Shown here: positions 23,001-64,000 of the stretch, piece after piece
Numbering within the stretch: the stretch's first letter is position 1
Layout of the letters: the number at the start of each line of letters is the position of its first letter
From: Macrostomum lignano
Lineage: Eukaryota
Direction of reading: 5' to 3'
Assembly (NCBI GenBank): GCA_002269645.1
Contig: NIVC01001550.1
Coordinates: 62,001 to 126,000 of the forward strand
DNA: 64,000 nt
Program-made: the position numbers and the translations under genes
The notes under the pieces: generated by a model
What the model saw: the letters and a program-made list of their open reading frames with translations, nothing else
Databases searched by the model: none
What the model was told of the DNA's origin: nothing

Positions 23001-24380
23001 GATGCTTCTATGATTTTTTCATGACGCTTCTATGATTTTTTACATGACGCTTCTATGATTTTTTACATGACGCTTCTATGATTCTCTACATTACGCTTCT
23101 ATGATTGTTTACACGACGCTTCTATGATTTTTTCATGACACTTTTATGATTGTTTACATGACGCTTCTATTATTTTTTACATGACGCTTCTATGACTTTT
23201 TCATGGCGCTTCTATGATTTTTTACATGACGCTTCTATAATTATTTACATGACGCTTCTATGCTTTTTTACATGACGCTTATATGATTGTTTACATGACG
23301 CTTCTATGCTTTTTTACATGACGCTTATATGATTGTTTACATGACACTTCTATGATTGTTTACATGACGCTTCTATGCTTTTTTACATGACGCTTCTATG
23401 CTTTTGTACATGACGCTTATATGATTGTTTACATAACGCTTCTATGATTGTTTACATGACGCTTCTATGATTTTTTACATGACGCTTCTTTGATTTTTTA
23501 CATGACGCTTCTATGATTTTTTCATGACACTTCTATGATTGTTTACATGACGCTTCTATGATTTTTTACATGACGCTTCTATGATTTTTTACATGACGCT
23601 TCTTTGATTGTTTACATGACGCTCCTATGATTTTTTACATGACGCTTCTATGATTCTCTACATGAGGCTTCTATGATTTTTTACATGACGCTTCTATGAT
23701 TTTTTACATGACGCTTCTATGATTTTTTACATGACGCTTCTATGATTTTTTCATGACACTTCTATGATTGTTTACATGACGCTTCTATGATTTTTTACAT
23801 GACGCTTCTATGATTTTTTACATGACGCTTCTTTGATTGTTTACATGACGCTTCTATGATTGTTTACATGATGCTTCTATGATTTTTTACATGACGCTTC
23901 TTTGATTTTTTATATGACGTTTCTATGATTTTTTCATGACACTTCTATGATTGTTTACATGACGCTTCTTTGATTGTTTACATGACGCTCCTATGATTTT
24001 TTACATGACGCTTCTATGATTCTCTACATGAGGCTTCTATGATTTTTTACATGACGCTTCTATGATTCTCTACATTATGCTTCTATGATTGTTTACACGA
24101 CGCTTCTATGATTTTTTCATGACGCTTTCATGATTGTTTACATGACGCTTCTATGATTTTTTACATGACGCTTCTATGATTTTTTTACATGACGCTTCTA
24201 TGATTTTTTCATGACGCTTTCATGATTTTTTACATGACGCTTCTATGATTGTTTACATGACGCTTCTATGATTTTTACATGACGCTTCTATGATTGTTTA
24301 CATGACACTTTTATGATTTTTTACATGACGCTTCTATGATTTTTTACATGACACTTCTATGATTGTTTACATGACGCTCT
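20030..24380 (+). repeat. 4.3-kb satellite of a 22-23 bp monomer with a 1281-bp higher-order duplication
   Basis: Monomer ATGACGCTTCTATGATT(T/G)TTTAC. Rare variants recur 1281 bp apart: 20664/21945, 20811/22092, 20925/22206, 21803/23084. Confidence 0.97.
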
Positions 24381-24427
24381 TGTCCTTTATTTGTCCTTTA
24401 ATAAAAGCTTTTAATAAAAAAACTTTT

Positions 24428-24495
24428 CACTACCAAGATTCGAACCCAGGTCGCTGCATTTGCAGTCTAGTCTGTTCACATCTAGGCTAGCTCTT
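24428..24495 (-). pseudogene. tRNA-derived relic (Cys-like anticodon loop), possibly a SINE head
   Basis: The minus strand reads TAGCCTAGATG (A-box-like), GACTGCAAAT (GCA anticodon loop) and GGGTTCGAATC (B box). No convincing acceptor stem. Confidence 0.55.
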
Positions 24496-27400
24496 ATCGT
24501 ATTTATAAATGAAATTGTAGCACTTATATTATTCAACACTCACTCACGAAGCAGTTATGACATAATCAATTTCCCAGGCAAGTCAGTATCAGTCTCAATT
24601 AAAGTTGACAATATGGTTACCCAATCTAAATCACGTCTGGTGCTACGCTTCCACACTGCATTTTCAATACTGTGACACAATTCAAGTCAGAGTTACAATT
24701 CATTTATGATGCAATCTATTTCAGAATCAGAATTCAACCAGTCAGTTTTCTCTAGCATTCTTACAATGCATTTCAAGTCGAAAAGTTTGCTTGACCTTTG
24801 CAAAAAAGCATGTTTTTCGAATATTTAATCGCTTTAACATGGAGCAATTTCTTAGCCAAGATGCATGTACCATAACGGGAAAATTTCTGATCGAACAGTG
24901 CAAGTCTCAATGAAAATCGGTTAAGCCATTTTTTCTCTAATCGATTACAAGCAAGCAAGATTTTCATTTTTAGTATATTGGATTATAGCTTGACCTATAT
25001 AAATATATTTATTTATTATTTATTCACTATACCAAGCAAGTAGCCTAACACAAAATAAATACCTTGCCTTGTTGTATATTCATCTTAATTTTTGTATAGC
25101 ATTACTAGTAGCAATGGTTTCCTAATAAACAGATAGCGATAGATTTGATAGATGTAATGATAGGGAATAAATGGGCATAAACACTGAAAAAGATTAAAGT
25201 TTTTGTATTATAGGTAATTAGTTTCAAATCTATTAGGCCTATTGTATCAATATTTATGAATATGATTGATTAAACATAATAACTAATATAAAATAGCTAC
25301 TATGTTGCTAATTAATGATAAAAAGAGAGCACAGACAAAGAGATTCAATGGTGTGGCCATATTGGTGTGTGGCCATCTTGGTCTTATACCATCTTGGTGT
25401 ACCCATGGCCATGGGCCATGGCCATCTTGGTCTTATACTTTAACTGACAACAAAGTATGGCATAGATTTTTTTTAGACTTAGACCTAGGTATAAGCTAGG
25501 CCTAAAGGTAAGCCTATAAAATTATGTTAGGCCCAATAGGCCTAGCTAGATCCTAAATTAAATTTAAAAACTAGGCATAGGCCTATTACAAAAACAAAAA
25601 CCTATTGCCATTACTGCCTTATGGCTTAGCCTTAGGCCTAGCCTAGTTTAGGTCTATTTTTGCTATTTAGTATTAGCCTTCTAGCTTATTTAACTAAATA
25701 TTAAAATAATTAATAAAATAATAAGCTAGGCCTAATCAAGCCTAGGCCCCTACTAACCCTAGCAATTAGCCTTAGACTAGGCATAGTCAGTAAATAACAA
25801 TTTGGCTAATAAAATTTTTTGGCACACACTAGATGCCCCTAAGGACTAGGCTAGGCTAAAAATAGCCTACGCTAGGCTAATAGAGTTTTTATAGGGCCTA
25901 GCTTTATTTCCATTTTGTAAGGCTCTTCTGGCTTCTTTAGGCCTATGGATATTTTAAAGATTTAATTTAAAAAATCAATTTAAATTGCACGCACGACTAG
26001 AAACACACCCCCAAGTTCCATACCATCGAGAAGCCTGCTTAAAAAATGCGATTGTCTCTTCCTAGTTAAATCACCCTACTTCTTCCAAGTGTGAAGTCGT
26101 GCTCCAGCTCACATCACATGACAGTGCAATTTTTATTTGAATATTTTTAACTCAAACTAACGAAACTGACCTAATAAAAAGTATTGGCTATGGTAAGTAA
26201 ACGTTATTAAGTAAAAATAGCGCAAAAATTATGATTTGTTTTGAAAAAAAGGACACTGAAATCGAATTATTTCAATAAATATTTCGTAACGTTCTTCTTC
26301 ATCAACGTAACGCTATAATGTTTGCTCGCGCCTCGCTGCATGATGGCAGCAGGTAGCAGCTAGTAATCATAGTGAAAATAGGCAACTTGGCCCTAGTATT
26401 AAATTTAACATTATAATTTAACAGTCCGATTTTCTTTCTCTATAATTTTTAATTTCGAATTAAAAAATTAGCTTTTATTCTATAATCTAGATATTGTTGC
26501 TTTGCAAAGTTATAAATTAGGCCTAACAAAAAACTACTTTTTTTCAAATTTTCTTTCTTCAAGTTCATGCACACACAGCACAGTTAGGTATCTCACTAGG
26601 CCTAGGCCTAAAATCTCTGGCTTATTTGACAAAATAAAATAAATTTAACAATTGACACTGTCATTAATGCCATTGGCATTGAAATCAAAAAATGATTTAG
26701 TAGACCTAGGCTTTGTCAATATTTTGCCTGAGCCCTGTATAAACACTTAATTTATTTTGACAGCAGTACTAAGGCTTAGAAAATTAGGCTGGGATTAGGT
26801 ATAATATGAAAGTTATTTAAAAACTGGGCAATTCAAAAGATTTGTCTTTATATATTGTATAATATTATTTGTTTTAAACTAAAAAATGCAAAAATTAGGC
26901 TTACCGCCTTGCCTTAGGCCTAGTCTAAATTATTGTTGAAAAAAACACATTAAAAATAAAAATTTTAATGGGATGATAATATATTCAATAAAAGCAACAG
27001 AATAAAATGAATAAAAAAGCCTAAAAAGAAAAGAAAATAATAAAAATAGGCCCTATAGCTATACTCTATTTTCATAAACAGGATAAGCCTATTAGACTAG
27101 AGCCTAAATGGCATCAATTGAAAAGTTTAAAATTAGGAATTAGAGATAATTATATTTTGAAATAGAGAATACTTAGCATAATAATTTACTATGTTGTATT
27201 CAAGTTTGAGAAGGCTTTAGGTTCAAAAGGAATAGAAGACTAAAGAGTTTGAATTTGAAGAGTTGAAAATATTAGGTTTTATAGGTTTATGGCTTAAAAA
27301 TAAAAAGAAGCAATTAAAGATAAGATAACATATAGTATATTTTTAGAAAGGGCAAAGGATGGTTAAATAGTTACAAGTATGTTGTGCTTAGATTTAAAGC

Positions 27401-27610
27401 TTTATGAGACACAGAAAATTTAGAATTAAGTTTATAGATATATTTATAGATAGGCCTACTGATTTTTATCAACTCAAAAAGATAGGATTGGCATATGTTT
27501 TAGTTCTAGACTTCTAAGTATATTTTATTGGACAAGAAATAAAGATGCAAGCCTATTGATTAAAGGCTGCTATAAGAGAATAGAGCTAGATATTAAATAG
27601 GGGGGGGGGG

Positions 27611-27970
27611 CTGGGTTTTTTTCGCCAGAGACAAGGTGCGAAATCGCACCTTGTGCCAAATTTCAAGGTGCGATTTTAAGGCTCAGAGTGCAATTTCTCT
27701 TGAGTCTTGTTTCAGACAACTGGGAATATATATTTTAATATCTTACATAAGGCTATAGCCATAGGCTATATCGCCTATATGACTTAATAGGATTTAAAGA
27801 GTTATTTTGTTTTATATTTTTAGGTACTGCATAAAAAATAGCTTAAGCATAGTTAAGCCTTTAAAGAAAAATGGTTATAAGACTGCACCTAAACCGCACC
27901 TACTTTTTTAATTTCAGGGTGCGATTTTAAAATTTAGGGTGCATATGCACACTGTACACAAAAAACCCTG
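27611..27970. mobile_element. hAT-like MITE inserted in a poly-G tract
   Basis: C(T/A)GGGTTTTTT terminal repeats with G runs on both sides and GGTGCG/CGCACC subterminal motifs. It interrupts a repeat whose unbroken homolog lies near 29160. Confidence 0.65.
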
Positions 27971-29658
27971 GGGGGGGCTAGCATATGTTTCTAACAATTA
28001 GTAAAAATAAATAATTTTAATTTTATTGCAATTCATGGCTTTACCAAAATTTTTACCGATATAATAGTAAGTCTATAATTATAATTGCATTAATAGCAAT
28101 TTATAGGCCCTATATAATGAATTCATTCAAATAATCAATTAACACTATTGGAAAATAACTAGGCCTAATAAATAGTAAGATAGGCATAATATTGATATAG
28201 GACTACTTAGTATTATTGGTATTTTAATTGGTTTTTTCAAATTTGAATTGGTTGTTTTTTTCATGTGTCAAAACAATTCATTGCTCATTCATGTTCATTG
28301 CTATTTGTCACTTGTTTTATAGTTATACTTAATAAACTTAACTATCAAATGTCTTAAAAACTCTTAAAATACAAAAAACTAGGCCTAATTTCAAATTTTA
28401 GAAATATATTTTTTTGTTTGCATTCAAACAAAAAATGGTTTCAATTTGACATTGATGGTTTTTCTTTCTATTCTAGTTTTTGATAATTTGATTTGTTAGA
28501 GGTTTGGTAAGTTGACATTAATCTTAGAATTAACAAGGTATCAATTTGGAATTAGGGATCTAAATCTAAGATGTCATGATATAGAGATAGAACAAATATT
28601 TGGAATCTTTAAAATGAAATTAAATCAACTGAATATGTGGTTCAAATCAGAATTAGAAAGTTGATAATCCAAATACTAAATAGTTGCTTTGATATGGGGC
28701 AAAGCTTTGGAATAAGTCAAGAGTTGAATATTGGTGTTGTGGCTCATAAGTAAAGGGAAAGGATAAAGGACAGATAAAAATTAGGGAATTAATAGACTAA
28801 GAAGTTTGTGTTTGAAAAGATAAGAATATTAAGGATTGTGGACTTGTAGCTAAAAAATGAGAGAATTACAGATTACATAATATACAGCATGTCTTGAGAA
28901 AAGATGGGTGCTTAAGCAGTTGCTAGCACTTTGTGCTCAGATTGAGTACTTAGGCTTTAGGAGGCTTTGAAGTTTGAGGCTTTAGGTTGTTTAAGAAAAG
29001 TGGAACATTAAGAATCAAGTTTACATATGCTTGTAACATGGATCAAGAATACTGATTCCTATAAACTTGGAGGGGTGGGGTTGGAATTTGGTCTGGGCAC
29101 ATTTCATTGGACAAGAAGATGCATGCCTATTGGTTTAAGGCTGCTAAAAGGAAAATGACTAGATATTAAATACCATGTGCTTCCAACAGTGAGTATAGCT
29201 AGACATTCCACATAGTTTAATCATAAATTTATCTAGAATAAACTCATTTAACCATCAATTAGCACTACTGACAATTGACTAATAAGTAGTGAAGTGGTTT
29301 GTCTAGACCATGAAATATTCAAATACTCTTAAAATTAATGGTTCTATATTTTCTGTAGTTCATATTTCATTTGAGTTAAGAAATATAATTATTTGGATGC
29401 TCAGGATTTTAAGACTTCTGCAACTTTTGTGGGTCAGAGAGGCTCAGTCATTATAAAATGTAAGCTAGAGATGTTGGATATTTCACTTGACTTTAAGAAA
29501 CTGTAATAAGAAAAAAGTACAATATATTCGTCAACAGAAAGCTAAGAACTAGCTGGGACTTGAACTACTAATAGTAGCATTTGACATTTCAAATGATTTT
29601 GAAATTCATGCAACTTTCAACCGCTACAGCAACAAGCGCACACTAAACGGCGAGCACT

Positions 29659-32512
29659 ATGGCTGACAACTTAGCAGTCCAAGATATAGAGAAATTGGAT
29701 GTGAGCAAGCTCACCCCGCTAACTCCCGAGGTGATTAGCCGTCAGGCCACAATCAATATCGGCACCATTGGTCACGTGGCCCACGGCAAGACCACAGTGG
29801 TGAAGGCCATCTCCGGCGTGCACACAATCCGGCACAAGAACGAACTGGTCCGCAACATCACCATTAAGCTGGGCTACGCTAATGCAAAAATCTACCGCTG
29901 CGACAATCAGCTGTGCCCTAAGCCCGGCTGCTATCGGAGCAAAGGCTCCGCACATCCGGACGACTTTCCCTGCGACCGGCCCGGCTGTTCCGGCCGGTTC
30001 CGGGTGCAACGCCACGTCTCCTTTGTTGACTGTCCCGGCCACGACATCCTCATGGCTACCATGCTGAACGGAGCCGCCGTTATGGACGCCGCTTTGCTGC
30101 TAATCGCTGGCAACGAGGCCTGTCCGCAGCCTCAGACCTCCGAGCACCTGGCCGCCGTTGAAATTATGCGACTGCGTCATCTGCTGATTTTGCAAAATAA
30201 AATCGATCTGATTAAAGAGCAGGAGGCCCAGAATCAGTATGAGGCTATTTTGGACTTCATCAAGGGCACCGTGGCTGACGGCAGCCCCGTGGTGCCGATC
30301 TCCGCCCAGCTTGGCTACAACATCGACGTGGTGTGCGAGTACATCTGCCGCCACGTGCCCGTGCCGCTGCGCGATTTCACTAGCGACCCCAGGCTTATCG
30401 TTATTCGCAGTTTCGATGTTAATAAGCCAGGTTGGTTAGTTTCTTATCTGATTGCTGATTCTTTCACAGCCTCCCAGATCCTCAGTTGCTGGGCCACCCT
30501 CTCAGATCCTCAGTTGCTGGGCCAGCCTCCCAGATCCTCAGTTGCTGGGCCACCCTCTCAGATCCTCAGTTGCTGGGCCAGCCTCCCAGATCCTCAGTTG
30601 CTTGGCCAGCCTCCCAAATCCTCAGTTGCTTGGCCAGCCTCCCAGATCCTCAGTTGCTTGGCCAGACTCCCAGATCCTCAGTTGCTGAGCCAGCCTCCCA
30701 GATCCTCAGTTGCTGAGCCAGCCTCCCAGATCCTCAGTTGCTGGGCCAGCCTCTCAGATCCTCAGTTGCTGAACCAGACTTCCAGATCCTCAGTTGCTGA
30801 ACCAGACTTCCAGATCCTCAGTTGCTGAACCAGACTTCCAGATCCTCAGTTGCTGGGCCAGACTCCCAGACTCACGAGATCCCTCCACATCTTGGGGAAT
30901 ACTTTTACATTAGCTATCAGTTTTTAATTTTTTATGCTTTAAAATAATTAGAAATGTTCATCATATCCTTCCCGGACTGAGTAGTTAGCCAAGCGCATGC
31001 TAATATAAAATCATTTACGTCAATCCAGGCTCGGAAGTTGACGATTTAAAAGGTGGCGTAGCCGGCGGCTCCGTCCTTCGCGGCGTCCTTCGCGTTGGCC
31101 AGGAGATCGAAGTCCGGCCGGGCATCATCTCCAAGGGCGCCGAGGGCCGCATGACCTGCCGGCCGATCCTGTCCCGAATCGTGTCGCTGTACACCGAGCG
31201 CAACGATTTGCAGTTCGCCGTTCCCGGCGGCCTGATCGGAGTTGGCACCATGGTTGATCCCACTCTGTGCCGGGCCGATCGCATGATTGGCATGGTTCTA
31301 GGCGCTGTTGGCACTTTGCCAAGCATCTACATCGAACTGGAGATCAGCTTCTTTCTGTTGCGCCGGCTGCTTGGCGTTCGAACCGAGGGTGACAAGAAAG
31401 GCGCCAAGGTTTGTTGGGGTGGTCTGTGACAGGGTTGCCAACAACAGGTTGATTTGCCTGAACCCAGGATTGTTTAGGTTTATTTAGCTTTGTTTACCAG
31501 CACCTGGATTTTTAGGTTTATTTAGTTTGGGCTACCAGCACCTAGATTTTTAGGTTTATTTAGTTTGGGTAACCAGTACCTATATTTTTAGGTTTATTTA
31601 GTTTGGGTAACCAGTACCTATATTTTTAGGTTTATTTAGTTTGGGCTTCCAGCACCTGGATTTTTAGGTTGATTTAGTTTGGGTAACCAGTACCTAGATT
31701 TTTAGGTTTCTTTTGGGTTACCAGCACTTAGATTTTTTAGGTTTATTTAGTTTGGGTTACCATCACCCATTTTCAAAGTTTTACTTAGGTTGGCTTACCA
31801 GTAATCAGTTTGTTTAGGTTTATTTAGGTTGTATTGCCAGTGACCAATATTTTTAGGTTTATTTAGGTTGTATTGCCAGTGACCAATATTTTTAGGTTTA
31901 TTTTGGTTGTATTGCCAGTGACCAATATTTTTAGGTTTATTTTGGTTGTATTGCCAGTGACCAATATTTTTAGGTTTATTTAGGTTGTATTGCCAGTGAC
32001 CAATATTTTAGGTTTATTTTGGTTGTATTGCCAGTGACCAATATTTTTAGGTTTATTTAGGTTGTATTGCCAGTGACCAATATTTTTAGGTTTATTTAGG
32101 TTGTATTGCTAGTGACGAATATTTTTAGGTTTTGTTACCAGAACTCAGATTTTTTAGGTTTATTTAGGTTAGGTTACTAGCACCTAGAGAGTTTAGATTT
32201 AGTTAGGTTTTTTGACTTAGGTGTCCATGTCCATCCACTGTGATTTTTAACGCTTATCTGCCCCCCCCTAAAAAATGAATCGCAGGTGCAAAAGCTGGCC
32301 AAGGCGGAGCTGCTGATGGTGAACATTGGCTCCCTGTCCACCGTTGCCGGGTGATTGCAGTTAAAAACGACCTGGCCCGCATCGCGCTCAACCAGCCAGT
32401 GTGCACTGAGATTGGCGAGAAGATCGCCCTGTCGCGCCGCGTTGACAAGCACTGGAGGCTGATCGGCTGGGGTCAGATTAGAAAGGGCTCGCCTATTAAA
32501 GTTGTGGAATGA
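29659..32512 (+). CDS. EIF2S3: Translation initiation factor 2 subunit gamma; about 459 aa if one missing base in exon 3 is restored
   Basis: Exons 29659-30430, 31029-31408, 32286-32512. Motifs: [62 protein letters not shown]. The reading frame shifts at about 32343. Confidence 0.96.
30470..30870 (+). repeat. 28 bp minisatellite in eIF2-gamma intron 1
   Basis: CAGATCCTCAGTTGCTGGGCCAGCCTCC. Confidence 0.95.
31480..32175 (+). repeat. About 37-39 bp T-rich minisatellite in eIF2-gamma intron 2
   Basis: TTTTTAGGTTTATTTAGGTTGTATTGCCAGTGACCAATA and relatives. Confidence 0.93.
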
Positions 32513-37829: not shown

Positions 37830-38700
37830 GGTTGAGAAACGGTCAGTGGGGAATTTCTTCCCCCCGGGTTTAAATATGGTTGGAGAAACGGTCAGTGGGG
37901 AATTTCTTCCCCGGGTTTAAATATGGTTGGAGAAACGGTCAGTGGGGAATTTCTTCCCCGGGTTTAAATATGGTTGGAGAAACGGTCAGTGGGGAATTTC
38001 TTACCCGGTTTTAAATATGGTTGGAGAAACGGTCAGTGGGGAATTTCTTACCCGGTTTTAAATATGGTTGAAGAAACGGTCAGTGGGGAATTTCTCTCCA
38101 GGGTTTAAATATGGGTGGAGAAACGGTCAGTGGGGAATTTCTTCCCCGGGTTTAAATATGGCTGGAGAAACGGTCAGTGGGGAATTTCTTCCCCGGGTTT
38201 AAATATGGCTGGAGAAACGGTCAGTGGGGAATTTCTTCCCGGGTTTAAATATGGCTTGAGAAACGGTCAGTGGGGAATTTTTCTCCCGGGTTTAAATATT
38301 GATTGAGAAACGGTCAGTGGGGAATTTCTCTCTCGGGTTTAAATATGGTTGGAGAAACGGTCAGTGGGGAATTTCTTCCCCGGGTTTAAATATGGCTGGA
38401 GAAACGGTCAGTGGGGAATTTCTTCCCCGGGTTTAAATATTGATTGAGAAACGGTCAGTGGGGAATTTCTCTCCCGGGTTTAAATATTGATTGAGAAACG
38501 GTCAGTGGGGAATTTCTCTCCCGGGTTTAAATATTGATTGAGAAACGGTCAGTGGGGAATTTCTTACCCGGGTTTAAATATGGTTGGAGAAACGGTCAGT
38601 GGGAATTTCTTCCCCGGGTTTAAATATGGCTGGAGAAACGGTCACTGGGGAATTTCTTCCCGGGGTTTAAATATGGGTTGAGAAACGGTCAGTGGGGAAT
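37830..38700 (+). repeat. About 47 bp minisatellite
   Basis: GAGAAACGGTCAGTGGGGAATTTCTTCCCCGGGTTTAAATATGGTTG. Confidence 0.95.
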
Positions 38701-39487: not shown

Positions 39488-40249
39488 AGTTGACTAATGC
39501 CATAATTATATTTTGCGATTAAAACTGTTGTGAAACCCCTATTGCAGCCGTCTCTGCATTTTGCCTGAAATTTTCCCAACTCTAGCGATTAAAACTCCGC
39601 TCTAATCGCTGTTTATCGGCACTTGTCTTTTGAGGTAAATTCCGGAAATTGCTGGGGATGCGTCTTCAAAGAGCAGAAAAGCGAAGTTTAAAAAGTGTTG
39701 AAGAAAAATTGCTCCCGGCGGCAGCTGCGCTAACGGCAAAGCCTGGCTGCTCAAAAAAGCAGGAAAACCTGTTTGACCAACCAGACAAGCCAACCCCAAG
39801 ACTCCAACTGCTCCGGCCTCTGTCCGCCGATGCACCGTAAGGATGTGGCGGATAAACAAGCCAATTAAATGGGCGGCCGGGGGGCTGCAGCGCACCGAAG
39901 TCAGCTGCTGTAGCTGGCAGACCAAGCCAAGACGCGGTGCAGCCGTCACCGCCAGCTATGATAGTCATAAATCATGCCCATGCAAGAGTGCGAAGCACTT
40001 CATCGGATGCATGACTAGCATTGTTGCAGCTATATTTTCAATCGCTGCTGTATGGGGGGGCTTATGCAGGTAAACCAACACTGCTAATTTAAAAAAGACT
40101 GATTGAACTGCGTGAAGAGTGGTGTCCCTGATACAAGCACAAAATTAAAGTGGCATCAGTGGCGTCCTGACGCGGACAATAAAAAAGTGACGCCGAAAAA
40201 CAAGGAACCACCGACACAGATAAATAAATGGCACTACTATCACCGAAAC

Positions 40250-41030
40250 ACAAAATAGTGGCACTCCTGACACCAAAGCAAAATAATGGCACTCCTGAAA
40301 CCAAAGCAAAATAATGGCACTCCTGAAACCAAAGCAAAATAATGGCACTCCTGAAACCAAAGCAAAATAATGGCACTCCTGAAACCAAAGCAAAATAATG
40401 GCACTCCTGACACCAAAACAAAATGGTGGCACTCCTGACACCAAAACAAAATAATGGCACTCCTGACACCAAAACAAAATGGTGGCACTCCTGACACCAA
40501 AGCAAAATAATGGCACTCCTGACACCAAAACAAAATGGTGGCACTCCTGAAACCAAAACAAAATAATGGCACTCCTGACACCAAAACAAAATGGTGGCAC
40601 TCCTGACACCAAAGCAAAATAGTGGCACTCCTGACACCAAAACAAAATAGTGGCACTCCTGACACCAAAACAAAATAGTGGCACTCCTGACACCAAAACA
40701 AAATAGTGGCACTCCTGACACCAAAACAAAATAATGGCACTCCTGACACCAAAACTAAATAGTGGCACTCCTGACACCAAAACTAAATAGTGGCACTCCT
40801 GACACCAAAACAAAATAATGGCACTCCTGACACCAAAACTAAACAGTGGCACTCCTGATACCAAAACTAAATAATGGCACTCCTGACGCTGATACAAAAG
40901 TGGCACTCCTGCCATTGAAAAGTGACACCAAATTTCGACACAGACACAGTGGCACTCCTGACGATGACACAGTGGCGCTCCTGGCGATGACACAAAAGTG
41001 GCACTCCTGACACAGACAAAAGATGACACC
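40250..41030 (+). repeat. 28 bp minisatellite
   Basis: GTGGCACTCCTGACACCAAAACAAAATA. Confidence 0.95.
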
Positions 41031-41246: not shown

Positions 41247-41252
41247 TATAAA
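41247..41252 (+). promoter_or_regulatory. Candidate TATA box of the insulin-like gene
   Basis: TATAAA lies in CpG-rich unique sequence about 140 nt upstream of the start codon. Confidence 0.4.
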
Positions 41253-41387
41253 TTCGGCAACAGACTGCGGCCCAAACGGCAGCTCTCTCAGCTCGATCCT
41301 CCAGCTTCTCCTGCCCGACACACTGCCAGATCTCAGCCAAATCGCTTCCCTATAATTGATTCAATAGGAAATCACCTGCTAAGCAAA

Positions 41388-42167
41388 ATGTAAGTCAATG
41401 ATTTTCGAATCACATTTTTCAAAAAAGCACCAAACAGTTTGTCCAATACAATCTAATCGTCACCTGCCCCCCCCCTCACCGCCGCAGGAGTTCGACACTT
41501 GTGACTGCCGTTTGCACAGGAAAAAGCTGCAGTCTCGGTGGCGGTCGGCTGCCACTGCTGCTGCTGCTGCTCGCCCTGTCAGCTGGGGCGGCCATGGCCG
41601 AGGACGCCCGCAGGGTCAGCCGGGCCGTTGGTCCGTTCGACAGCTACGAAGAGGTCAGTCGTGAGAGCAGCTCGCAGCCCCATGCGCCGCATACAATTTT
41701 ATCCGATGCCGCATCGCTAAAAGACCCGCATGACTTTTTTTTCCAGATTAGCTTGTCGCCAAACTCAAAGATTTACAAGGCGTGCGGTTTGCCGCTGATG
41801 ATCCTGATGACTCGCGCCTGCAGGCGTCACGGCGGACTCTACGTGCCGGCTAAGGACCCGGTGCTGGAGGAGTTCGGCAGTCTGTCCAAGAGTGAGTTGC
41901 TCTGCTCAGCCCCCCTGAAAAACTCCCTAATGCATCGTAATTTGAGAATCGAAAATTTCCATTGCAGTCACGAAAATGCCCCCCGTCGGAGCCGGAGGCG
42001 TCAGGAACCCCTGCAACAGACCCGACATCGGGCAGCGCGACCCGTTCCTCCAGTGCTGCTGCAACTACTGCTCGGAGAGGACACTGCGCGGCTTTTGCTC
42101 TGACGACGCGCGCCACGCCTCCCAGCAGCTTTTCCTGATGGCCCGGTCGGGCAAGAGGTCCAATTAA
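41388..42167 (+). CDS. Insulin/relaxin-family peptide precursor, 170 aa
   Basis: Exons 41388-41389 (AT), 41488-41653, 41747-41891, 41968-42167, with matching phases. Hydrophobic signal segment LPLLLLLLALSAGAAMA; B chain CGLPLMILMTRAC (C-x11-C); A chain CCCNYCSERTLRGFC (CC-x3-C-x8-C). Confidence 0.88.
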
Positions 42168-48955: not shown

Positions 48956-49469
48956 CCTATTTTAACCTTTGGGGCTTGTTTGATCTCGAACGGTTTTGTA
49001 ACATACCTACTTTGGCCTCCTTGTTACTTAGATTGGCTTGGTGATCCAGACTAGATATTATATTTAAAGCCTTTAAGTTACTAGATAATTAACAAAGCTA
49101 GCTAAAACTAAAGCCACCTTTATTATTTCTGTCTGTTATCTATAGACTATAAGGTTAGATTCTTTTTTAGGGAATTTATGCTACTAAGCAAATTATATTA
49201 TATTATATTTAATAAAAAGTGTATAATGTCTTTCTGTATCTGAGCAATGCATTATGTTGTCTTTAGTGGAAGTAGAATCTGCTTTCAAAGGCTCTACTCT
49301 AATGCTATATTAAGGTAAGCATTTTGCTAATAAATATTCATATATATAGTTTCAACTTTCAATATGTTAAATTGAAATGAATATTCACTTAGAAGAAAGT
49401 TGCTTTCTAGTTATGGTATAATAGTTTTTTATTGTTTTAATGTAGTAAGTATTTTATTAAATAACTGAT

Positions 49470-50820
49470 CACTAGCACCTGGCTACACACTGGAGCACTG
49501 GCACCTAGATACACACACTGAGCATTGGTACCTAGATACACACACTGGTCACTGGCACCTGGATATACACACGGATCACTGGCACCTGGATACACACACG
49601 GATCACTGGCACCTGGATACACACACGGATCACTGGCACCTGGATACACACACGGATCACTGGCACCTGGATACACACACGGATCACTGGCACCTGGATA
49701 CACACACGGATCACTGGCACCTGGATACACACACTGGTCACTGGCACCTGGATACACACACGGATCACTGGCACCTGGATACACACACGGATCACTGGCA
49801 CCTGGATACACACACGGATCACTGGCACCTGGATATACACACGGATCACTGGCACCTGGATATACACACGGATCACTGGCACCTGGATACACACACGGAT
49901 CACTGGCACCTGGATACACACACGGATCACTGGCACCTGGATACACACACGGATCACTGGCACCTGGATACACACACTGGTCACTGGCACCTGGATACAC
50001 ACACGGATCACTGGCACCTGGATACACACACGGATCACTGGCACCTGGATACACACACGGATCACTGGCACCTGGATATACACACGGATCACTGGCACCT
50101 GGATATACACACGGATCACTGGCACCTGGATACACACACGGATCACTGGCACCTGGATACACACACGGATCACTGGCACCTGGATACACACACGGATCAC
50201 TGGCACCTGGATACACACACGGATCACTGGCACCTGGATATACACACGGATCACTGGCACCTGGATATACACACGGATCACTGGCACCTGGATACACACA
50301 CGGATCACTGGCACCTGGATACACACACGGATCACTGGCACCTGGATACACACACGGATCACTGGCACCTGGATATACACACGGATCACTGGCACCTGGA
50401 TATACACACGGATCACTGGCACCTGGATACACACACGGATCACTGGCACCTGGATACACACACGGATCACTGGCACCTGGATACACACACGGATCACTGG
50501 CACCTGGATACACACACGGATCACTGGCACCTGGATATACACACGGATCACTGGCACCTGGATATACACACGGATCACTGGCACCTGGATACACACACGG
50601 ATCACTGGCACCTGGATACACACACGGATCACTGGCACCTGGATACACACACGGATCACTGGCACCTGGATACACACACGGATCACTGGCACCTGGATAC
50701 ACACACGGATCACTGGCACCTGGATACACACACGGATCACTGGCACCTGGATACACACTTTAAGCATTGGTACCTGAATACACACACTAAGCACTGGCAC
50801 CTGGATGGATACACACACTG
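49470..50820 (+). repeat. Highly homogeneous 24 bp minisatellite, probably in LETM1 intron 1
   Basis: GGATACACACACGGATCACTGGCACCT-type 24-nt period, more than 50 copies. Confidence 0.98.
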
Positions 50821-50899
50821 AGTACCGACCCCTCTAGTTCGTTATTAATATTAATCGCGAGTTTATTAAGAGTTGGCATATTCATCCTGCCCCACCGAA

Positions 50900-53800
50900 A
50901 GCCGGCAGGCTGCCTGCATCAGCCAGGCGGCGTCATCAGAGCGCTGGCAATGGCACCAGCAGCAGCGGCTCCGGCATCAGCAACCATTGCTGTTGAATCG
51001 CGCGCAGCATCCAATACAGTCGCAGCTGGCATCTGTACTGCTGATCCGCGGCCTGCACTCGAGCTGCTGTCATCGCACTGGCGATGAGATCAAAAACAAG
51101 CCGCCGCCGCCGCCGCCGGCTTCGCCGCCAGCAAAGACGCAGTCGCAGCCGCCGACGGCTCGGCCGTCACTGCCTGCCCGAATCTGGCACGAGATTCTGC
51201 ACTATTGGAACGGCTTCCGCCTGCTAGCCTTGGAGACTCGGATCGCCCTGCGAATCAGCTTGAAGTACATGCGCGGCGCCACCATCTCTAGGCGGGAGCG
51301 GCGCCACCTGGTTCGCACAGTGGCCGACTTGTTCAGAATGGTGCCCTTCTTGTTCTTCATTGTAATCCCGTTCATGGAGTTCCTGCTGCCATTCTATATT
51401 AAATTCATGCCATTCATGCTGCCGAGCACGTTCAAGGAGAAGGACAAGGAGGCTGAGAAGTTGCGCATTAAGCTCAAGGCCAAGCTGGAGACGGCCAAGT
51501 TTCTGCAGGAGACTCTTTATGAAGGCTTTCAAGCGAAGACTACGGTAAAGCGAGCAGGGCTTGCCACTCTTATAGATTGTCCGCAACCCCATCGTCACTC
51601 ATACTCTTGGTCACAGCCCCCAATCACAGTCACCTGTCACAACCCCCAGTCAGTCCCACAATCACAGTCCCCAGTCACAGGCCCCTATCACAGTCCCCAG
51701 TCACAGGCCCCTATCACAGTCCCCAATCACAGCCCCCAATCACAGTCACCTATCACAGTCCCCAGTCGCAGTCTTCAGTCCCAGTTTACAGTCAACAGTC
51801 ACACCTTCCGTCACAGTCCTTAGTTCCAGTAATAGTCCCAGTAATGATTCTCAGTGACCGTCCATCACAGCCCCAGTCACAGTCCTAGTCCTCAGTCACT
51901 GTCTGTCACAGTCCTAGTCCTCAGTCACAACCAGTACAACCCCAACTGTCGCCCAACCAGGACAAGTCCAATCGCGAAGCCCTGGCCGATTTTCGCCGCT
52001 TCATGCAAAAGTGCACAACGGCGAGTCGCTATGCAACTACAGACGAGCTGCTGCGCTTCTCCGCCCTATTTGCCGACGAGTTGACGCTCGACAATCTCGA
52101 ACGGCCACAGCTGATGGCCATCTGCAAACTGTTGGACATGGCCGCCGTCGGGTCCAAAGCCATGATCCTGCTCCAGCTGGAGCTGCGGCTCCGTCAGCTG
52201 CACACTGACGATTTGATGATTCGCGACGAGGGCGTCGACCGGCTGAACGTGACGGAGTTGCAGGCCGCCTGTCGGGCCCGCGGCATGCCGGCTCTGGGCG
52301 TGTCCGAGGATCGGCTGAGGGAGCAGCTGAGCCAGTGGCTTGATCTGCACCTGGTGCACAGCGTGCCGGTCTCCCTGCTGCTGCTGTCCAGGCTGCTGCA
52401 CTTCCCCGACAGTGTCGATGCAGAGGAGAGGCTGCGCAAGGTGATTGGCAGCCTGCCAGAGCAGGCGATTCGCTCCGCCGAGGCGTCCAGCTCCGAGGCC
52501 GACAGCCGCACCCGATTGGAGGCTTTGAAGAGCCGTGACCGGGCAATCCGCTCCGAGGAGGCCGAGATTAAGAAGACGCAGAAGCAGAAGAAAAAGCATC
52601 AACAGGAAGAGGTGGCGGATGTGCTCACGACTGCTGACTCTGCCGAGAGGCTGCGCGATCCGGCCGAGGCGGCTGGAGCGACCACTGGCCGGTCAGCGAC
52701 AGCCGCCGGCGACGCCGCGTCTGACGGAGCCGACATTGACGTCGGCGCCGCGGATCTACAAGCGCTAGAGTCGGCCATCGACGAGGTGTCGGCAAAAGCG
52801 CTGGACGAGGAGGAGATTCGCGAACTGAAAGAGGAGCTGAGCGAGTACTTCAGCGGCCTGGCCGACGCCCCCATCGTCGGCGATGTCAGAAGGGAGCGAA
52901 GCAAGGAAGAGAAACGGGTGGGTGATGCTTTTGGGCTCTGGAGTGACCTTTTGTGCTCTGCGTTGACCCGGAGTGACCTTTTAGGCTCTGGATTGACCCA
53001 GAGTGACCTTTTAGGCTCTGGATTGACCCGGAGTGGCCTTTTAGGCTCTGGATTGACCCGGAGTGGCCTTTTAGGCTCTGGATTGACCCGGAGTGGCCTT
53101 TTAGGCTCTGGATTGACCCGGAGTGATCTTTTAGGCTCTAGATTGACCGGGGGTGATCTTTTAGGCTCTGGATTGACCGGGGTGATCTTTTAGGCTCTGG
53201 ATTGACCGGGGTGATCTTTTAGGCTCTGGATTGACCGGGGTGATCTTTTAGGCTCTGGATTGACCGGGTGATCTTTTAGGCTCTGGATTGACCGGGGTGA
53301 TCTTTTAGGCTCTGGATTGAGCCGAATGACCTTTTGTGCTCTGGAGTGACCTGGAATGACCTTTTCGGCTCTAAATTGACCTGAAATGACCTTTCTATGC
53401 TCTGGATTGACTCGAAGTGACCTTTTAGGCTCTGGATTCACCCAGAGTGACCTTTTGCGCTCTATATTGACCCAGAGTGACCTTTTAGGCATTAGATTGA
53501 CCCGAGGTGACCTTTTGGGCTCTGTATTAACCAGAGTGACCTTTTAGGCTCTTGATTGACCCAGAGTGACCTTGATTGAGCCAGAGTGACCTTCTAGGCT
53601 ATTTATTGACTTGGAGTGACATTTTGGGCGCTGGATTGACCCGAAGTGCCCTTTTCGGCTCTTAGTTGACCCAGAGTGACCTTTTGGGCTCTATATTGAC
53701 CCAGAGTGACCTTTTAGGCATTAGATTGACCCGAGGTGACCTTTTGGGCTCTGTATTAACCAGAGTGACCTTTTAGGCTCTTGATTGACCCAGAGTGACC

Positions 53801-55412
53801 TTGATTGAGCCAGAGTGACCTTCTAGGCTATTTATTGACTTGGAGTGACATTTTGGGCGCTGGATTGACCCGAAGTGCCCTTTTCGGCTCTTAGTTGACC
53901 CAGAGTGACCTTTTACGCACTCATGCAAACGCTCACTCAGGGTCAGGCGTGTATACACTGTACATTGGGGGTTGGCCCTCATGCGTGTGAATTTAGTGTA
54001 GCTTCTGCTTTGCTCGATCCAAAGTTGTGCCTTTAATCTCTGCTGCACCGCACAGGCCGCTAAGCTGCTGTCAGCCAAGGTGGACAGGCTTCTGCATGAG
54101 ATGGACGGCATGTTTGACAAGGTCTACTCAGAGAAGGAGGCCCTTGAGCGGCGGCTGCACAAGGCCGAGCGAGACCAGGCGGAGCTCAGCAACGACGCCG
54201 CCGAATCCTCGGTCGACGTCGCCACGGACATGGAGCGGCAGCTAGCGAAGCAGATCGCCAAGCACCGCGAGCAGGTGCTGTCAATGAACGACATTTTATT
54301 AGCCCTGCGCCGGCTGCAGAAAATGCCTGACGACGACAAATGGGAGCGAATACTGCAGGTGCTCGACGAGGACAAGGATGGCAAAATCGAGGTGCAACAC
54401 GTTGTCAAGGTGAGGCCCGAAGCTCTGACTGAAGGTCGAGTTACTTTAACTAAAAAATTCAGTTCGAGGTACAAGTTTGAAACCAAAGTGCCAGTTTGAA
54501 ACCAAAGTGCCATTTTGAAACCAAAGTGCCAGTTTGAAACCAAAGTGCCATTTTGAAACCAAAGTGCCATTTTGAAACCAAAATGCCAGTTTGAAACCAA
54601 AGTGCCAGTTTGAAACCAAAGTGCCAGTTTGAAACCAAATTTCCAGTTTGAAACCAAAGTGCGAGTTTGAAACCAAAGTGCCATTTTGAAACCAAAGTGC
54701 CAGTTTGAAACCAAAGTGCCAGTTTGAAACCAAATTGCCAGTTTGAAACCAAATTGCCAGTTTGAAACCAAAGTGCCAGTTTGAAACCAAAGTGCCAGTT
54801 TGGTCAAGTGCCATTTTAAAACCAAAGTGCCAGTTTGAAACCAAATTTCCAGTTTAAAACCGAAGTGCCAGTTTGAAACCAAAGTGCCAGTTTGAAACCA
54901 AAGTGCCAGTTTGAAACCAAATTTCCAGTTTGAAACCAAATTGCCAGTTTGAAACCAAAGTGCCAGTTTGAAACCAAAGTGCCAGTTTGGTCAAGTGCCA
55001 TTTTAAAACCAAAGTGCCAGTTTGAAACCAAAATGCCAGTTTAAAACCAAAGTGCCAGTTTGAAACCAAAGTGCCAGTTTGAAACCAAAGTGCCAGTTTG
55101 AAACCAAAGTGCCAGTTTAAAACCAAAGTGCCAGTTTGAAACCAAAGTGCCAGTTTGATACCAAAGTGCCAGTTTGAAACCAAAGTGCCATTTTGAAACC
55201 AAAGTGCTGGACCCAACAGGGTCAAACTGTTTCCCTATGCTCCAGCTTGTACTTTCTCATTCCAACAGGTGATCGAACTGCTGGGCTCTGAGAATCTTCG
55301 ATTGAGCTCGCGAGACCTCACGAAACTGCTGGAAACCCTGGACAAGGAGAAGCTGCTGTCCCTCAAGGGCAAGGATAAGGACAAGGACCCCGGTCGGAAG
55401 CTGTTGGATTAG
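50900..55412 (+). CDS. LETM1: LETM1 mitochondrial inner-membrane EF-hand protein (5' exon not located)
   Basis: Exons about 50900-51544, 51961-52917, 54056-54409, 55269-55412. HYWNGFRLL...RRERRHLVRTVADLFRMVPF...LPSTF, TM segment with prolines, LETM1 RBD (LDNLERPQL...ELQAACRARGM), EF-hand DEDKDGKIE. Confidence 0.93.
51590..51940 (+). repeat. Degenerate CACAGTCCC-type array in a LETM1 intron
   Basis: Recurrent CACAGTCC/CAGTCAC motifs. Confidence 0.8.
52940..53915 (+). repeat. 30 bp minisatellite in a LETM1 intron
   Basis: GAGTGACCTTTTAGGCTCTGGATTGACCCG. Confidence 0.95.
54475..55205 (+). repeat. 19 bp minisatellite in the last LETM1 intron
   Basis: TTTGAAACCAAAGTGCCAG. Confidence 0.96.
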
Positions 55413-57643: not shown

Positions 57644-60010
57644 CTACAGCTCCACTTTTGGCTCGGGCATCTGCTGATCCGTCTCCAACTCCGAATGGTT
57701 GTATCCGGGCGGTTTCTCCTCCTGTTGCTGCTCATGCGGCTTAATCACAATTACCTGGTTCCGCTTGCGGTCGGCTAGCTTCTTGTGCACCAGCAGCGCG
57801 CCGTACATTGCCAGTTCCAGGATCTCAACTAGCGTCACGATTGATGCACCGATCCATAGGCCTGAGAGAATTGATTGCTAATTGTTTTATATTCAATTTG
57901 TGGAATTGGCGCTCAGTGGCTTCTGTCTAGCTGTAATTATAACCTCCAAATAGTAACAATATCAATCTTGAAAGGTGCGCAACAAAAAGTTTTCTCCAGT
58001 ATTCTTAAACTTTAAACTACTTGAAGGTATTTTATAATGAAGGAGAAAGGCGTTTTGGTGTTTTTTCATTACCTAAAATTCCACCCAAATCCGAAAAGAA
58101 ATTTCTCAGCGGATAGGCCCAACTCTCGATGCTCATTTGCACGATCAGGTCCCTTGGGTACAGATCTAGAACTCCGGCGTAATATTTGACGCGACTTTCG
58201 TAGTTGCTGACCAGATCTTTGAGTCCCCGCACGTCCAAGCCCCTCGCCTTGGCCTCGTTCAGCGCTTCCGTGGCCAGATTGGACACCGCCTTGCCAGAAT
58301 ATTTCACGCTGTTCGGCCAATGGTAGTAGCGAGGCATCACTTCGTGCGATTTGACCCGGCACAGCACCGGGCAGCCGTGGGTGTCCACTCCCTCTCTGTT
58401 CTGCCTGTCCAGCACTCGCTGATAGCAGTCCAGGCGGGCGATGGTGCCGTTGTACATGTCGTAGTTGGTGGCGACATAATCCATCAGAGGGTATTTGTAC
58501 CAGCTGTCGTTGCGGATAGTGTAGTAGGTGTAGCTCGACGTTGGCCTTCTGTAAAAGATGTCCCGAAACAAGACGTGCTCGTTGATGTCGTGACAGACGC
58601 CTGGCTGCGCCATGTAGTACAGATCGGCCGGCTTGGGCAGGTGAGTGGCCAGGCAGCCGCAGGTGTCCAAGTACTCTTGCTGCATGATGCGCACGCGGCA
58701 GTCTTCGGTGCTGCCACGGAAGGTTTCATTCTCTGGCCCAGTCAGCTGGCTGTAGTCGGTGATGTAGGTTGCGTTGGGCAGGCTCTCCAGGCATCGATAG
58801 CTGCTCCGGTCGACTTTTTCCTGTATGGAAGTGTCAATCACCGCCTCGGTTTTGTACTTGAGCGGCGACATCACGTGCGGTCCGTTCATGTTTGGCTTCA
58901 CGCCTGTTGTAAATTTGGGGTGAGGTGGTTAGATTATCCGGTTGGTTTTGTGTAGAGAAACCGGCTTGCAAACCAGCATGCCTTACGCACCTCTTGGATG
59001 CAGCACCACCTTCATTCCTGGTATATCGTCGATCTCCTCTTCGTCAGTAAAGAATGACGAACTGTATGTGTACATGAGCAGATAAAGTCCGTTGCCGGGC
59101 CCGGCCCTGACCACCGTATTGTTAAGCGGCGCGAACGTCATGCACTTAAACAGCTCGTCGTCCTTGTAGATGGTGAAATTCAAATAACTGCAGGGAATCG
59201 AGTTGAATCGGCAGAGCAGGACAATCTCGTACGGGTCGGGTAGTTGTTTTGACCTTAAATTTTTAATAAAACAGCGATCTAAAGACTAAGTAAGTGATTA
59301 CGCATTAATGGGCACCATGTAAAGGTGTTTCTTTACAATGTAAGTGCAGTTTTAACGGTCTTCAACGGTAATCTTAATTCATTTTGACATCCGGTTTCTA
59401 AGACGTACAAAAATTATTGTCCAACTGTCACTAGATTTTGGTGAGCCAGCGACCATGCATCCACGCATAGCGGCCTGACTCTGGCTCACCTGTATGCGAT
59501 TTTGTTTAGAGCCAGTTTACCGTGCCGATAGCTGCTGTATGGATTCACCGGCACGCTAGCGTTCATGTCCGTTTGGTTGAGCAGGTGAAAGAACCGGGAC
59601 ACGTCGTAGATCATGTCCACCAGACCGCGCGCTCGACCAGGCACTGCCACGGGGCTTGGCACCGGGTCATAGCCGTAGGTGACGCTCAGATAGTTCGTCG
59701 AACAGATGGTCACGTCGGGAAATTCGAAGAAGTCCGTGCGAGCCTCCAACTCTGTGCTAACCGGATAGGAGGTGTACTGCTGCACCAGCATGCTGAGATG
59801 CAGAATGAAGCCTACGCACACTCCGACGACCACCAGGGCCCAGAGGACGCGCTGGACTCCGGAGCCCTGGCTCAGTCGGAAGATGCCGTGGCTGCTGGCC
59901 AGCTGCTGCTGCTGCTTCGTCGGCTGCTGATCCTCGATGCTGTCCTCGTTCCCGAAAGCCGCTTGCGCTGTGCGAACATCAGGCCTCGAGTTTATCGCCG
60001 AGCGTAGCAT
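57644..60010 (-). CDS. DEG/ENaC/ASIC-family ion channel subunit, 610 aa
   Basis: Exons 60010-59490, 59253-58991, 58903-58073, 57861-57644, total 1833 nt with matching phases. N-terminal SSHG, TM1, FPDVTIC, GPGNGL, Cys-rich thumb, TM2 SDLGGILGLWIGAS, C-terminal PPGY. The first in-frame ATG was taken as the start. Confidence 0.92.
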
Positions 60011-61679: not shown

Positions 61680-64000
61680 ATGGTAGATAGCATTGGATTG
61701 CTAATCTATCCATGGTAAATAGCATTGGATTGCTAATCTATCCATGGTAGATAGCATTGGATTGCTAATCTATCCATGGTAAATAGCACTGGATTGCTAA
61801 TCTAGCCAACATCGTGGAGGTAGGCATGCACTGGATTGCTAATCTAGCCAACATCGTGGAGTACGAAATGGATTGGATTGCTAATATATCCAACATAATG
61901 GAGTACGAAATGGATTATTGGATTGCTAATCTAGCCAACATCGTGGAGGACAAAATGGATTAGATTGCTAATCTAGCCAACATCGTGGAGGACGAAATGG
62001 ATTGGATTGCTAATCTATCCATGGTAAATAGCATTGGATTGCTAATCTATCCATGGTAAATAGCATTGGATTGCTAATCTATCCATGGTAAATAGCATTG
62101 GATTGCTAATCTATCCATGGTAGATAGCATTGGATTGCTAATCTATCCATGGTAAATAGCACTGGATTGCTAATCTAGCCAACATCGTGGAGGTAGGCAT
62201 GCACTGGATTGCTAATCTAGCCAACATCGTGGAGTACGAAATGGATTGGATTGCTAATCTATCCATGGTAAATAGCATTGGATTGCTAATCTATCCATGG
62301 TAAATAGCACTGTATTGCTAATCTATCCAACATAATGGAGTACGAAATGGATTATTGGATTGCTAATCTATCCAACATAATGGAGTACGAAATGGATTGG
62401 ATTGCTAATCTATCCATGGTAAATAGCATTGGATTGCTAATCTATCCAACATCGTGGAGTACGAAATGGATTATTGGATTGCTAATCTATCCAACATAAT
62501 GGAGTACGAAATGGATTGGATTGCTAATCTATCCAACATAATGGAGTACGAAATGGATTATTGGATTGCTAATCTATCCAACATCGTGGAGTACGAAATG
62601 GATTATTGGATTGCTAATCTATCCAACATAATGGAGTACGAAATGGATTGGATTGCTAATCTATCCAACATAATGGAGTACGAAATGGATTGGATTGCTA
62701 ATCTATCCAACATAATGGAGTACGAAATGGATTGGATTGCTAATCTATCCAACATAATGGAGTACGAAATGGATTATTGGATTGCTAATCTAGCCAACAT
62801 AATGGAGTACGAAATGGATTGGATTGCTAATCTATTCAACATCGTGGAGGACGAATGGATTGGATTGCTAATCTATCCAACATAATGGAGTACGAAATGG
62901 ATTGGATTGCTAATCTATTCAACATCGTGGAGGACGAATGGATTGGATTGCTAATCTATCCAACATAATGGAGTACGAAATTGATTATTGGATTGCTAAT
63001 CTAGCCAACATAATGGAGTACGAAATGGATTATTGGATTGCTAATCTATCCAAAATAATGGAGTACGAAATGGATTATTGGATTGCTAATCTAGCCAACA
63101 TCGTGGAGTACGAAATGGATTGGATTGCTAATCTATCCAACATCGTGGAGTACGAAATGGATTGGATTGCTAATCTATCCAACATAATGGAGTACGAAAT
63201 GGATTATTGGATTGCTAATCTAGCCAATATAATGGAGTACGAAATGGATTATTGGATTGCTAATCTATCCAACATAATGGAGTACGAAATGGATTATTGG
63301 ATTGCTAATCTAGCCAACATCGTGGAGTACGAAATGGATTGGATTGCTAATCTATCCAACATAATGGAGTACGAAATGGATTATTGGATTGCTAATCTAG
63401 CCAACATCGTGGAGTACGAAATGGATTGGATTGCTAATCTATCCAACATAATGGAGTACGAAATGGATTGGATTGCTAATCTATCCAACATAATGGAGTA
63501 CGAAATGGATTGGATTGCTAATCTATCCAACATAATGGAGTACGAAATGGATTGGATTGCTAATCTATCCAACATAATGGAGTACGAAATGGATTATTGG
63601 ATTGCTAATCTAGCCAACATAATGGAGTACGAAATGGATTGGATTGCTAATCTATTCAACATCGTGGAGGACGAATGGATTGGATTGCTAATCTATCCAA
63701 CATAATGGAGTACGAAATGGATTGGATTGCTAATCTATTCAACATCGTGGAGGACGAATGGATTGGATTGCTAATCTATCCAACATCGTGGAGTACGAAA
63801 TGGATTGGATTGCTAATCTATCCAACATCGTGGAGTAGGAAATGGATTGGATTGCTAATCTAGCCAACATAATGGAGTACAAAATGGATTATTGGATTGC
63901 TAATCTATCCAACATAATGGAGTACGAAATGGATTGGATTGCTAATCTATCTAACATATTGGAGTACGAAATGGATTGGATTGCTAATCTATCCAACATA
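61680..64000 (+). repeat. 42/45 bp minisatellite with shorter 31 bp variants (runs off the window end)
   Basis: GGATTGGATTGCTAATCTATCCAACATAATGGAGTACGAAAT, with or without a TAT insert. Confidence 0.97.

Follow-up and report, generated by a model that had tools for sequence, protein, structure and literature searches.

Among the described insulin-like peptides (ILPs), the closest counterparts of the locus examined here come from flatworms. The planarian prohormone Smed-ILP-1 (sequence from the supplement to Collins et al. 2010, PMC2953531; UniProt E3CTK9) has a two-cysteine B domain (FCQHRLLKAITTLC) that is followed by a long connecting region, by a cysteine within ...SPESINCNAYKK and, ten residues on, by ECCCKSCTMLNLFKYC and then PSDDEARSLKFIK. 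Expression of planarian ilp-1 is found in the CNS and in the testes, and insulin signaling is needed for the control of planarian size and stem cells (Miller & Newmark 2012). For the schistosome peptides SjILP, SmILP and ShILP, Du et al. 2017 (PMC5391603) give the A-chain signature as CCCX(2)CX(8)C. SjILP binds both SjIR1 and SjIR2, and when adult worms are exposed to recombinant SjILP in vitro, an anti-phospho-Erk antibody detects a band of 44 kDa. Cestode ILP-1 is expressed mainly in ovarian tissue.

Outside the flatworms, the β-type insulins of Caenorhabditis elegans place their extra cysteine pair at a residue after the second B-chain cysteine and at a residue beside the last A-chain cysteine. 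In vertebrate insulin-like growth factors (IGFs), the C domain is short, at 8 to 12 residues. Molluscan four-disulfide ILPs follow the signature C(1X)CC(3X)C(8X)C, in which the extra A-chain cysteine bonds an extra cysteine near the B-chain N terminus (PMC9221753).

The DNA analyzed here is a 64-kb stretch from the free-living flatworm Macrostomum lignano, referred to in its entirety as the window. The locus at positions 41388 to 42167 of its + strand is very probably, as judged from its sequence, the gene for a secreted flatworm-type ILP, of the structural class to which Smed-ILP-1 and the ILPs of schistosomes also belong.

Gene model and predicted precursor

Reading of the sequence and translation of the spliced exons predict a four-exon gene at 41388–42167 that encodes a secreted precursor of 170 amino acids; all features described for it lie on the + strand. 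A TATAAAT box, the putative promoter element, is found at 41247–41253, 135 nt 5′ of the start codon, and no ATG occurs between this box and position 41388. Exon 1 ends with the first two bases of a split start codon ('AT', 41388–41389, read as AT/gtaagt), the remainder of the exon being 5′ UTR. Intron 1 (41390–41487, 98 nt, GTAAGT...CAG) closes with the acceptor ...ccgcag at 41487, after which the G of the start codon comes from exon 2 (41488–41653), an exon that also encodes the signal peptide and the N-terminal extension EDARRVSRAVGPFDSYEE with its RR and RVSR. Intron 2 (41654–41746, 93 nt, GTCAGT...TTTTTTTTCCAG) is in frame and free of stop codons. Exon 3 (41747–41891) supplies the remainder of the extension, the B domain KACGLPLMILMTRAC and the start of the connecting region, followed by intron 3 (41892–41967, 76 nt, GTGAGT...TTGCAG). 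Exon 4 (41968–42167) encodes the remainder of the connecting region with C120, the A domain, the tail, G-K-R and S-N, and ends with the stop codon TAA (42165–42167). All three introns obey the GT–AG rule and have pyrimidine-rich acceptors. Intron 3 lies in phase 1 within the connecting (C) region, splitting codon 105 after its first base at a point 24 residues past C81; insulin-superfamily genes typically carry an intron of this phase in the C region. No AATAAA occurs within ∼580 nt of the stop codon; the closest ATTAAA lies at 42749.

The split start codon is needed because the signal-peptide frame contains no upstream in-frame ATG in the contiguous genomic sequence, where the mechanical open reading frame begins with GTG at 41501, and because the first internal ATG (M36) comes only after the hydrophobic core. 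That the start codon is split and that intron 2 is spliced out are both predicted by the gene model. The M. lignano spliced leader ends in ATG, and trans-splicing of this leader at 41487 was considered as another source of the start codon; it is unlikely, as the leader ATG would be out of the signal-peptide frame if joined to 41488. The cis-spliced AT/G start is preferred over a start codon provided by the spliced leader.

The predicted product has the layout MSSTLVTAVCTGKSCSLGGGRLPLLLLLLALSAGAAMA / EDARRVSRAVGPFDSYEEISLSPNSKIYKA-C-GLPLMILMTRA-C-RRHGGLYVPAKDPVLEEFGSLSKITKMPPVGAGGVRNP-C-NRPDIGQRDPFLQ-CCC-NY-C-SERTLRGF-C-SDDARHASQQLFLMARS-G-KR-SN. Residues 1 to 38 form a putative signal peptide with the h-region LPLLLLLLALSAGAAMA and a predicted cut at AMA/ED, which fits the −3/−1 rule as judged by eye. 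Its hydrophobic core spans residues 22 to 37 (LPLLLLLLALSAGAAM), with a Kyte–Doolittle 11-residue mean of up to 2.7 and a hydropathy peak at residues 19 to 28; the n-region holds two further cysteines (residues 10 and 15). Past the signal peptide the precursor contains eight cysteines (C69, C81, C120, C134, C135, C136, C139 and C148), with spacings of 11/38/13/0/0/2/8. The first two delimit the B domain, C69-G-LPLMILMTRA-C81 (C-G-x10-C), which is encoded in exon 3 with C69 at 41783–41785 and C81 at 41819–41821. The connecting region from C81 to C134 comprises 52 residues and includes the extra cysteine C120 within RNPCNR (42012–42014, exon 4). The A domain, QCCCNYCSERTLRGFC (42054–42098), conforms to CC-x3-C-x8-C, the first x being a cysteine. 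It is followed in exon 4 by the tail SDDARHASQQLFLMARS (42099–42149) and by G-K-R (42150–42158), then S-N and the stop codon, such that 22 residues lie past C148 and end in G-K-R-S-N. Dibasic sites occur only at R42R43 in the N-terminal extension, at R82R83 right after C81 and at K167R168, with RVSR at residues 43 to 46; the stretch from R83 to the A domain has neither a dibasic nor an RxxR site. The insulin-like peptide precursor put forward in an earlier, sequence-only reading of this DNA is borne out by the eight-cysteine framework, the signal peptide and the B and A domains. The particulars given by that reading also hold at the positions listed above: six canonical cysteines plus two more (in RNPCNR and CCC), both on the C/A side, an N-terminal extension with RR, the lack of a dibasic site ahead of the A domain and a tail followed by G-KR.

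The sole strong match to this product among 5.8 billion clustered proteins was M. lignano A0A1I8HS64 (E 3.5e-73). This entry and its cluster mate A0A1I8HI28 are both named 'IlGF domain-containing protein' by UniProt's own annotation. With the translated intron taken out, A0A1I8HI28 departs from the gene model at 3 of 169 positions (A8V, I105T and S165P), which fits an origin of the window in M. lignano or a near-identical source. Each of the two UniProt models carries a 31-residue insert, VSRESS...FFFQ, that is the exact translation of intron 2, and each lacks the initiator methionine. The retained intron and missing methionine are probably gene-model errors, or possibly reflect an intron-retention isoform. 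Both the copy in the window and A0A1I8HI28 (ARPGKRSN) have the G-KR; a frameshift removes it from the model A0A1I8HS64, the tail of which (…ARRARGPINKLNNTWQL) corresponds to the other reading frame of window positions 42140–42167 after a 1-bp indel near GCCCGGTCGGGC. This frameshift could be a real paralogue difference that removes G-KR, or an assembly error. Automatic annotation already places the M. lignano ILP gene in the insulin family, and the gene is uncharacterized; a literature search found no published description of an M. lignano ILP. The present analysis provides a corrected gene model with an intron-split start codon and with the 93-nt in-frame intron 2 removed, whereas the public protein models appear without the split start and with intron 2 retained. 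As M. lignano is a transgenic, RNAi-tractable model of stem cells and regeneration, a defined ILP gene is a useful reagent.

The eight-cysteine layout among flatworm and other insulins

All eight cysteines of the M. lignano ILP align with those of Smed-ILP-1 in a MAFFT alignment, and the cysteine spacings of the two precursors (11/47/10/0/0/2/8 in Smed-ILP-1 and 11/38/13/0/0/2/8 in M. lignano) are the same apart from loop lengths. Both precursors contain a signal peptide, an N-terminal extension ahead of the B domain and a two-cysteine B domain of the form C-x11-C, followed by a long connecting region with one extra cysteine shortly upstream of an A domain of the form CCC-x2-C-x8-C. An acidic SDD(E)AR motif stands straight after the last cysteine in both. 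Pairwise BLASTP aligned 20 A-domain residues, including the trailing SDD, at 45% identity (E 0.003 for a single comparison) and detected no significant similarity outside the A domain region; identity in the global MAFFT alignment is ∼25%. The two proteins also differ in several respects. The extra cysteine is separated from CCC by 10 residues in Smed-ILP-1 and by 13 in the M. lignano ILP, and a KK present between the extra cysteine and the A domain in Smed-ILP-1 has no equivalent site in M. lignano. The B domain begins with C-Q in the planarian and with C-G in M. lignano. The Smed-ILP-1 tail is short and ends in ...SDDEARSLKFIK, with K as the last residue and without G-KR, in contrast to the G-KR of the M. 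lignano tail.

The schistosome ILPs, together with the cestode and trematode ILPs of Wang et al. 2014, resemble the M. lignano ILP in their CCC signature, secreted B-C-A precursor and IlGF annotation. For the schistosome peptides this likeness is drawn from the published A-chain signature, and the upstream cysteine was compared with Smed-ILP-1 only. Gene structure differs: schistosome ILP genes have two exons and a very large intron (8–12 kb), whereas the M. lignano gene has four exons and introns of 76 to 98 nt.

The arrangement of cysteines had been regarded in the sequence-only reading as unusual or undescribed, with a match to an already described ILP class set beforehand as the outcome that would tell against novelty. 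Such a match was found, in that Smed-ILP-1 has the same eight-cysteine layout and the schistosome ILPs have CCCX(2)CX(8)C, and the claim of novelty fails because of it. The layout does differ, as that reading had maintained, from the mollusc type of four-disulfide insulin and also from the nematode type, the extra cysteines being both on the C/A side. The C. elegans β-type insulins (for example INS-6 and DAF-28) have four disulfides, the number predicted for the M. lignano ILP, and some members are without an excised C peptide, but the positions of their extra pair are different from those in M. lignano. Vertebrate IGF-I and IGF-II resemble the M. lignano ILP in lacking a dibasic site from the B to the A domain and in having a D/E-like extension past the A domain, with a basic cleavage site close to the end of the extension. 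However, the IGFs have six cysteines and not eight, and their C domain is short as compared to the connecting region of 52 residues in M. lignano. A specific sequence relationship to the vertebrate IGFs is not detectable, with IGF-I appearing as a weak match in a PDB profile search only. Molluscan MIPs resemble the M. lignano ILP in having eight cysteines, four predicted disulfides, the insulin framework and a lophotrochozoan origin. The mollusc-type extra cysteine is absent from the M. lignano ILP, in which L132-Q133 precede CC and no cysteine occurs between the signal peptide and C69; its B domain is without an extra cysteine, unlike that of the MIPs. In a cuttlefish ILP (PMC9221753), KR sites flank the C peptide, whereas the M. 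lignano precursor has no dibasic site in the corresponding stretch from R83 to the A domain.

With the M. lignano gene, the CCC-type eight-cysteine layout of flatworm ILPs now extends to the Macrostomorpha, an early-branching flatworm lineage. This reach suggests that the layout is ancestral for the phylum and not a peculiarity of planarians or parasites. The current understanding of insulin-family hormones is unchanged by the gene.

Predicted folding, processing and signaling

After loss of the signal peptide, the propeptide would, by analogy, fold with the canonical bonds C69–C135, C81–C148 and C134–C139. A fourth bond, C120–C136, is proposed by elimination and by alignment to CC-x3-C, and would anchor the final part of the connecting segment to the first helix of the A domain. 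The positions of this further pair, C120 and one cysteine of CCC, align with those of Smed-ILP-1; the C120–C136 bond is inferred, pairing inside the CCC triplet being not assignable from sequence. With no dibasic site separating the B domain from the A domain, the ILP of M. lignano may stay single-chain, in an IGF-like manner, or be cut at single arginine or lysine residues. The C-terminal G-K-R is a classic signal for cleavage and amidation; trimming of ...ARS-G-KR-SN could yield the amidated end ...ARS-NH2. The G-KR is at most a lineage-specific feature.

Cutting of the product into a two-chain or three-piece hormone, at the single basic residues K104, K107, R117 and R128 of the connecting region, is a plausible course though not the favored one. 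At 52 residues, the connecting region is much longer than an IGF C domain and is close in length to excised C-peptides, which would be consistent with its removal. Likewise, Smed-ILP-1 has KK between the extra cysteine and CCC, and cleavage there was predicted by Collins et al. 2010 (PMC2953531), who also list mass matches to the fragments YSPESINCNAY and FCQHRL, bearing an unexplained superscript mark in the table. In the M. lignano precursor, however, the stretch from R83 to the A domain is devoid of dibasic and RxxR sites, and R122 is followed by proline.

A wider scheme, which appears unlikely, is that a flatworm-specific fourth disulfide, from the upstream cysteine to the third one of CCC, tethers the connecting peptide by its end to the A domain, with the planarian KK giving rise to a three-piece hormone and Macrostomum having a single chain with gained C-terminal amidation or a released amidated tail. 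If true, this scheme would represent a variety of processing not documented for insulin-family hormones.

Quite unlikely is the release of the tail as a separate product, in which cuts after R153 and at K167R168 would free the amidated peptide HASQQLFLMARS-NH2 as a second bioactive peptide, as the sequence-only reading had suggested. In its favor, the G-K-R signal is present in both the window copy and A0A1I8HI28, and the tail is predicted to be helical in both low-confidence AlphaFold2 models. However, the end of Smed-ILP-1 (...SDDEARSLKFIK) is without a Gly-dibasic signal, and a 1-bp frameshift destroys GKR in the A0A1I8HS64 model. Release would also require a monobasic cut at AR/H without a supporting upstream basic pattern, and amidation with the tail still attached to the A domain fits the sequence equally.

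On the preferred reading of the locus as encoding a secreted flatworm-type ILP, the mature hormone would be expected, by analogy, to bind insulin-receptor-type tyrosine kinases and to signal through PI3K/Akt and Erk. As is reported for planarian and schistosome ILPs, such signaling would make growth, the proliferation of stem cells and the function of the gonads responsive to nutrition.

Superfamily membership and genomic surroundings

Membership in the insulin/IGF/relaxin superfamily is regarded as secure, with little doubt attached, because several features point to it together: a signal peptide, a full set of framework cysteines, the order of the domains, the intron position and the PDB profile matches. 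In a six-frame scan of the 64-kb window, the A motif (CC-x3-C-x8-C) and the B motif CG-x10-C each occurred once, both in the ILP gene and in the correct order. Simulated windows (n = 200, first-order Markov) contained the A motif at 0.165 per window, and in none of the 200 was the A motif accompanied by a same-strand B motif within 700 nt upstream.

Sequence matches beyond M. lignano were all marginal, and weak sequence statistics are usual for short, fast-evolving ILPs. A Pfam-A scan of the 170-residue product returned no family at E ≤ 10, and a single-sequence phmmer search of the PDB returned insulin as a weak match (E 0.27 and 0.43). When a profile of the M. lignano and Smed-ILP-1 sequences was used against the PDB, 11 of 12 matches belonged to the insulin family, again weakly (DILP2 A chain, E 0.024; DILP5, E 0.07; IGF-I, E 0.14). 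The same two-member profile returned just the two input families from 5.8 billion proteins, and phmmer with A0A1I8HS64 against 1.84 billion representatives returned nothing beyond the query itself. AlphaFold2 models had mean pLDDT values of 49.6 (single sequence) and 44.6 (two-row alignment), both of low confidence; they show helices in the B domain and at two places in the A domain, as in insulin topology, at a confidence too low to count. Foldseek comparison of the first model to the PDB gave one meaningless match (E 4.1).

It is highly improbable that the cysteine pattern arose by chance or belongs to a pseudogene, with no functional hormone being made: the missing Pfam match and the extreme richness of the surrounding genome in tandem repeats would fit such an origin, but the reading frame is intact, splice sites are canonical throughout, a signal peptide is present, the A and B motifs never co-occurred in the simulations, all cysteines are kept in two further M. 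lignano copies with just three substitutions and the eight-cysteine layout is common to a cloned, expressed planarian gene. A second ILP gene in the 64-kb window was ruled out, none being found by tblastn or motif scan.

Several other coding regions were recognized in the window. A GTP_EFTU-domain open reading frame of the translational GTPase family lies at 29659–30828 (+ strand; E 3.7e-25), a La-domain open reading frame at 11484–12188 (− strand; E 7e-18) and a fragment of an amiloride-sensitive sodium channel (DEG/ENaC) at 58032–58901 (− strand; E 5e-8). A LETM1-like gene occupies 50873–53193 (+ strand), where two open reading frame pieces match positions 1–99 and 98–227 of LETM1_RBD; an intron is therefore implied near 51823–52003. 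No functional link to the ILP gene was seen for the GTP_EFTU, La-domain, LETM1 or DEG/ENaC neighbors.

The window is crowded with minisatellite arrays, ∼30 in number and with units of 12 to 47 bp; examples are at 20078–24378, 49467–50806, 61790–64000, 37830–38700 and 40229–40911. One array consists of 188 copies of a 23-bp unit (4.3 kb). Three arrays lie directly 5′ of the ILP gene (47 bp × 19, 12 bp × 24 and 28 bp × 24), and a 30-bp tandem array (52940–53915) overlaps the 3′ part of the LETM1-like gene. Arrays with a period that is a multiple of three, such as the 27 bp × 50 array at 49467–50806, make long spurious open reading frames on both strands. A Pfam 'Podoplanin' match at 49467–50806 contained no domain above threshold and is probably a repeat artifact. 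The interval 16000–28000 is AT-rich, with a GC content of 31–35% as compared to 42% for the whole window, and consists largely of 23-bp satellite.
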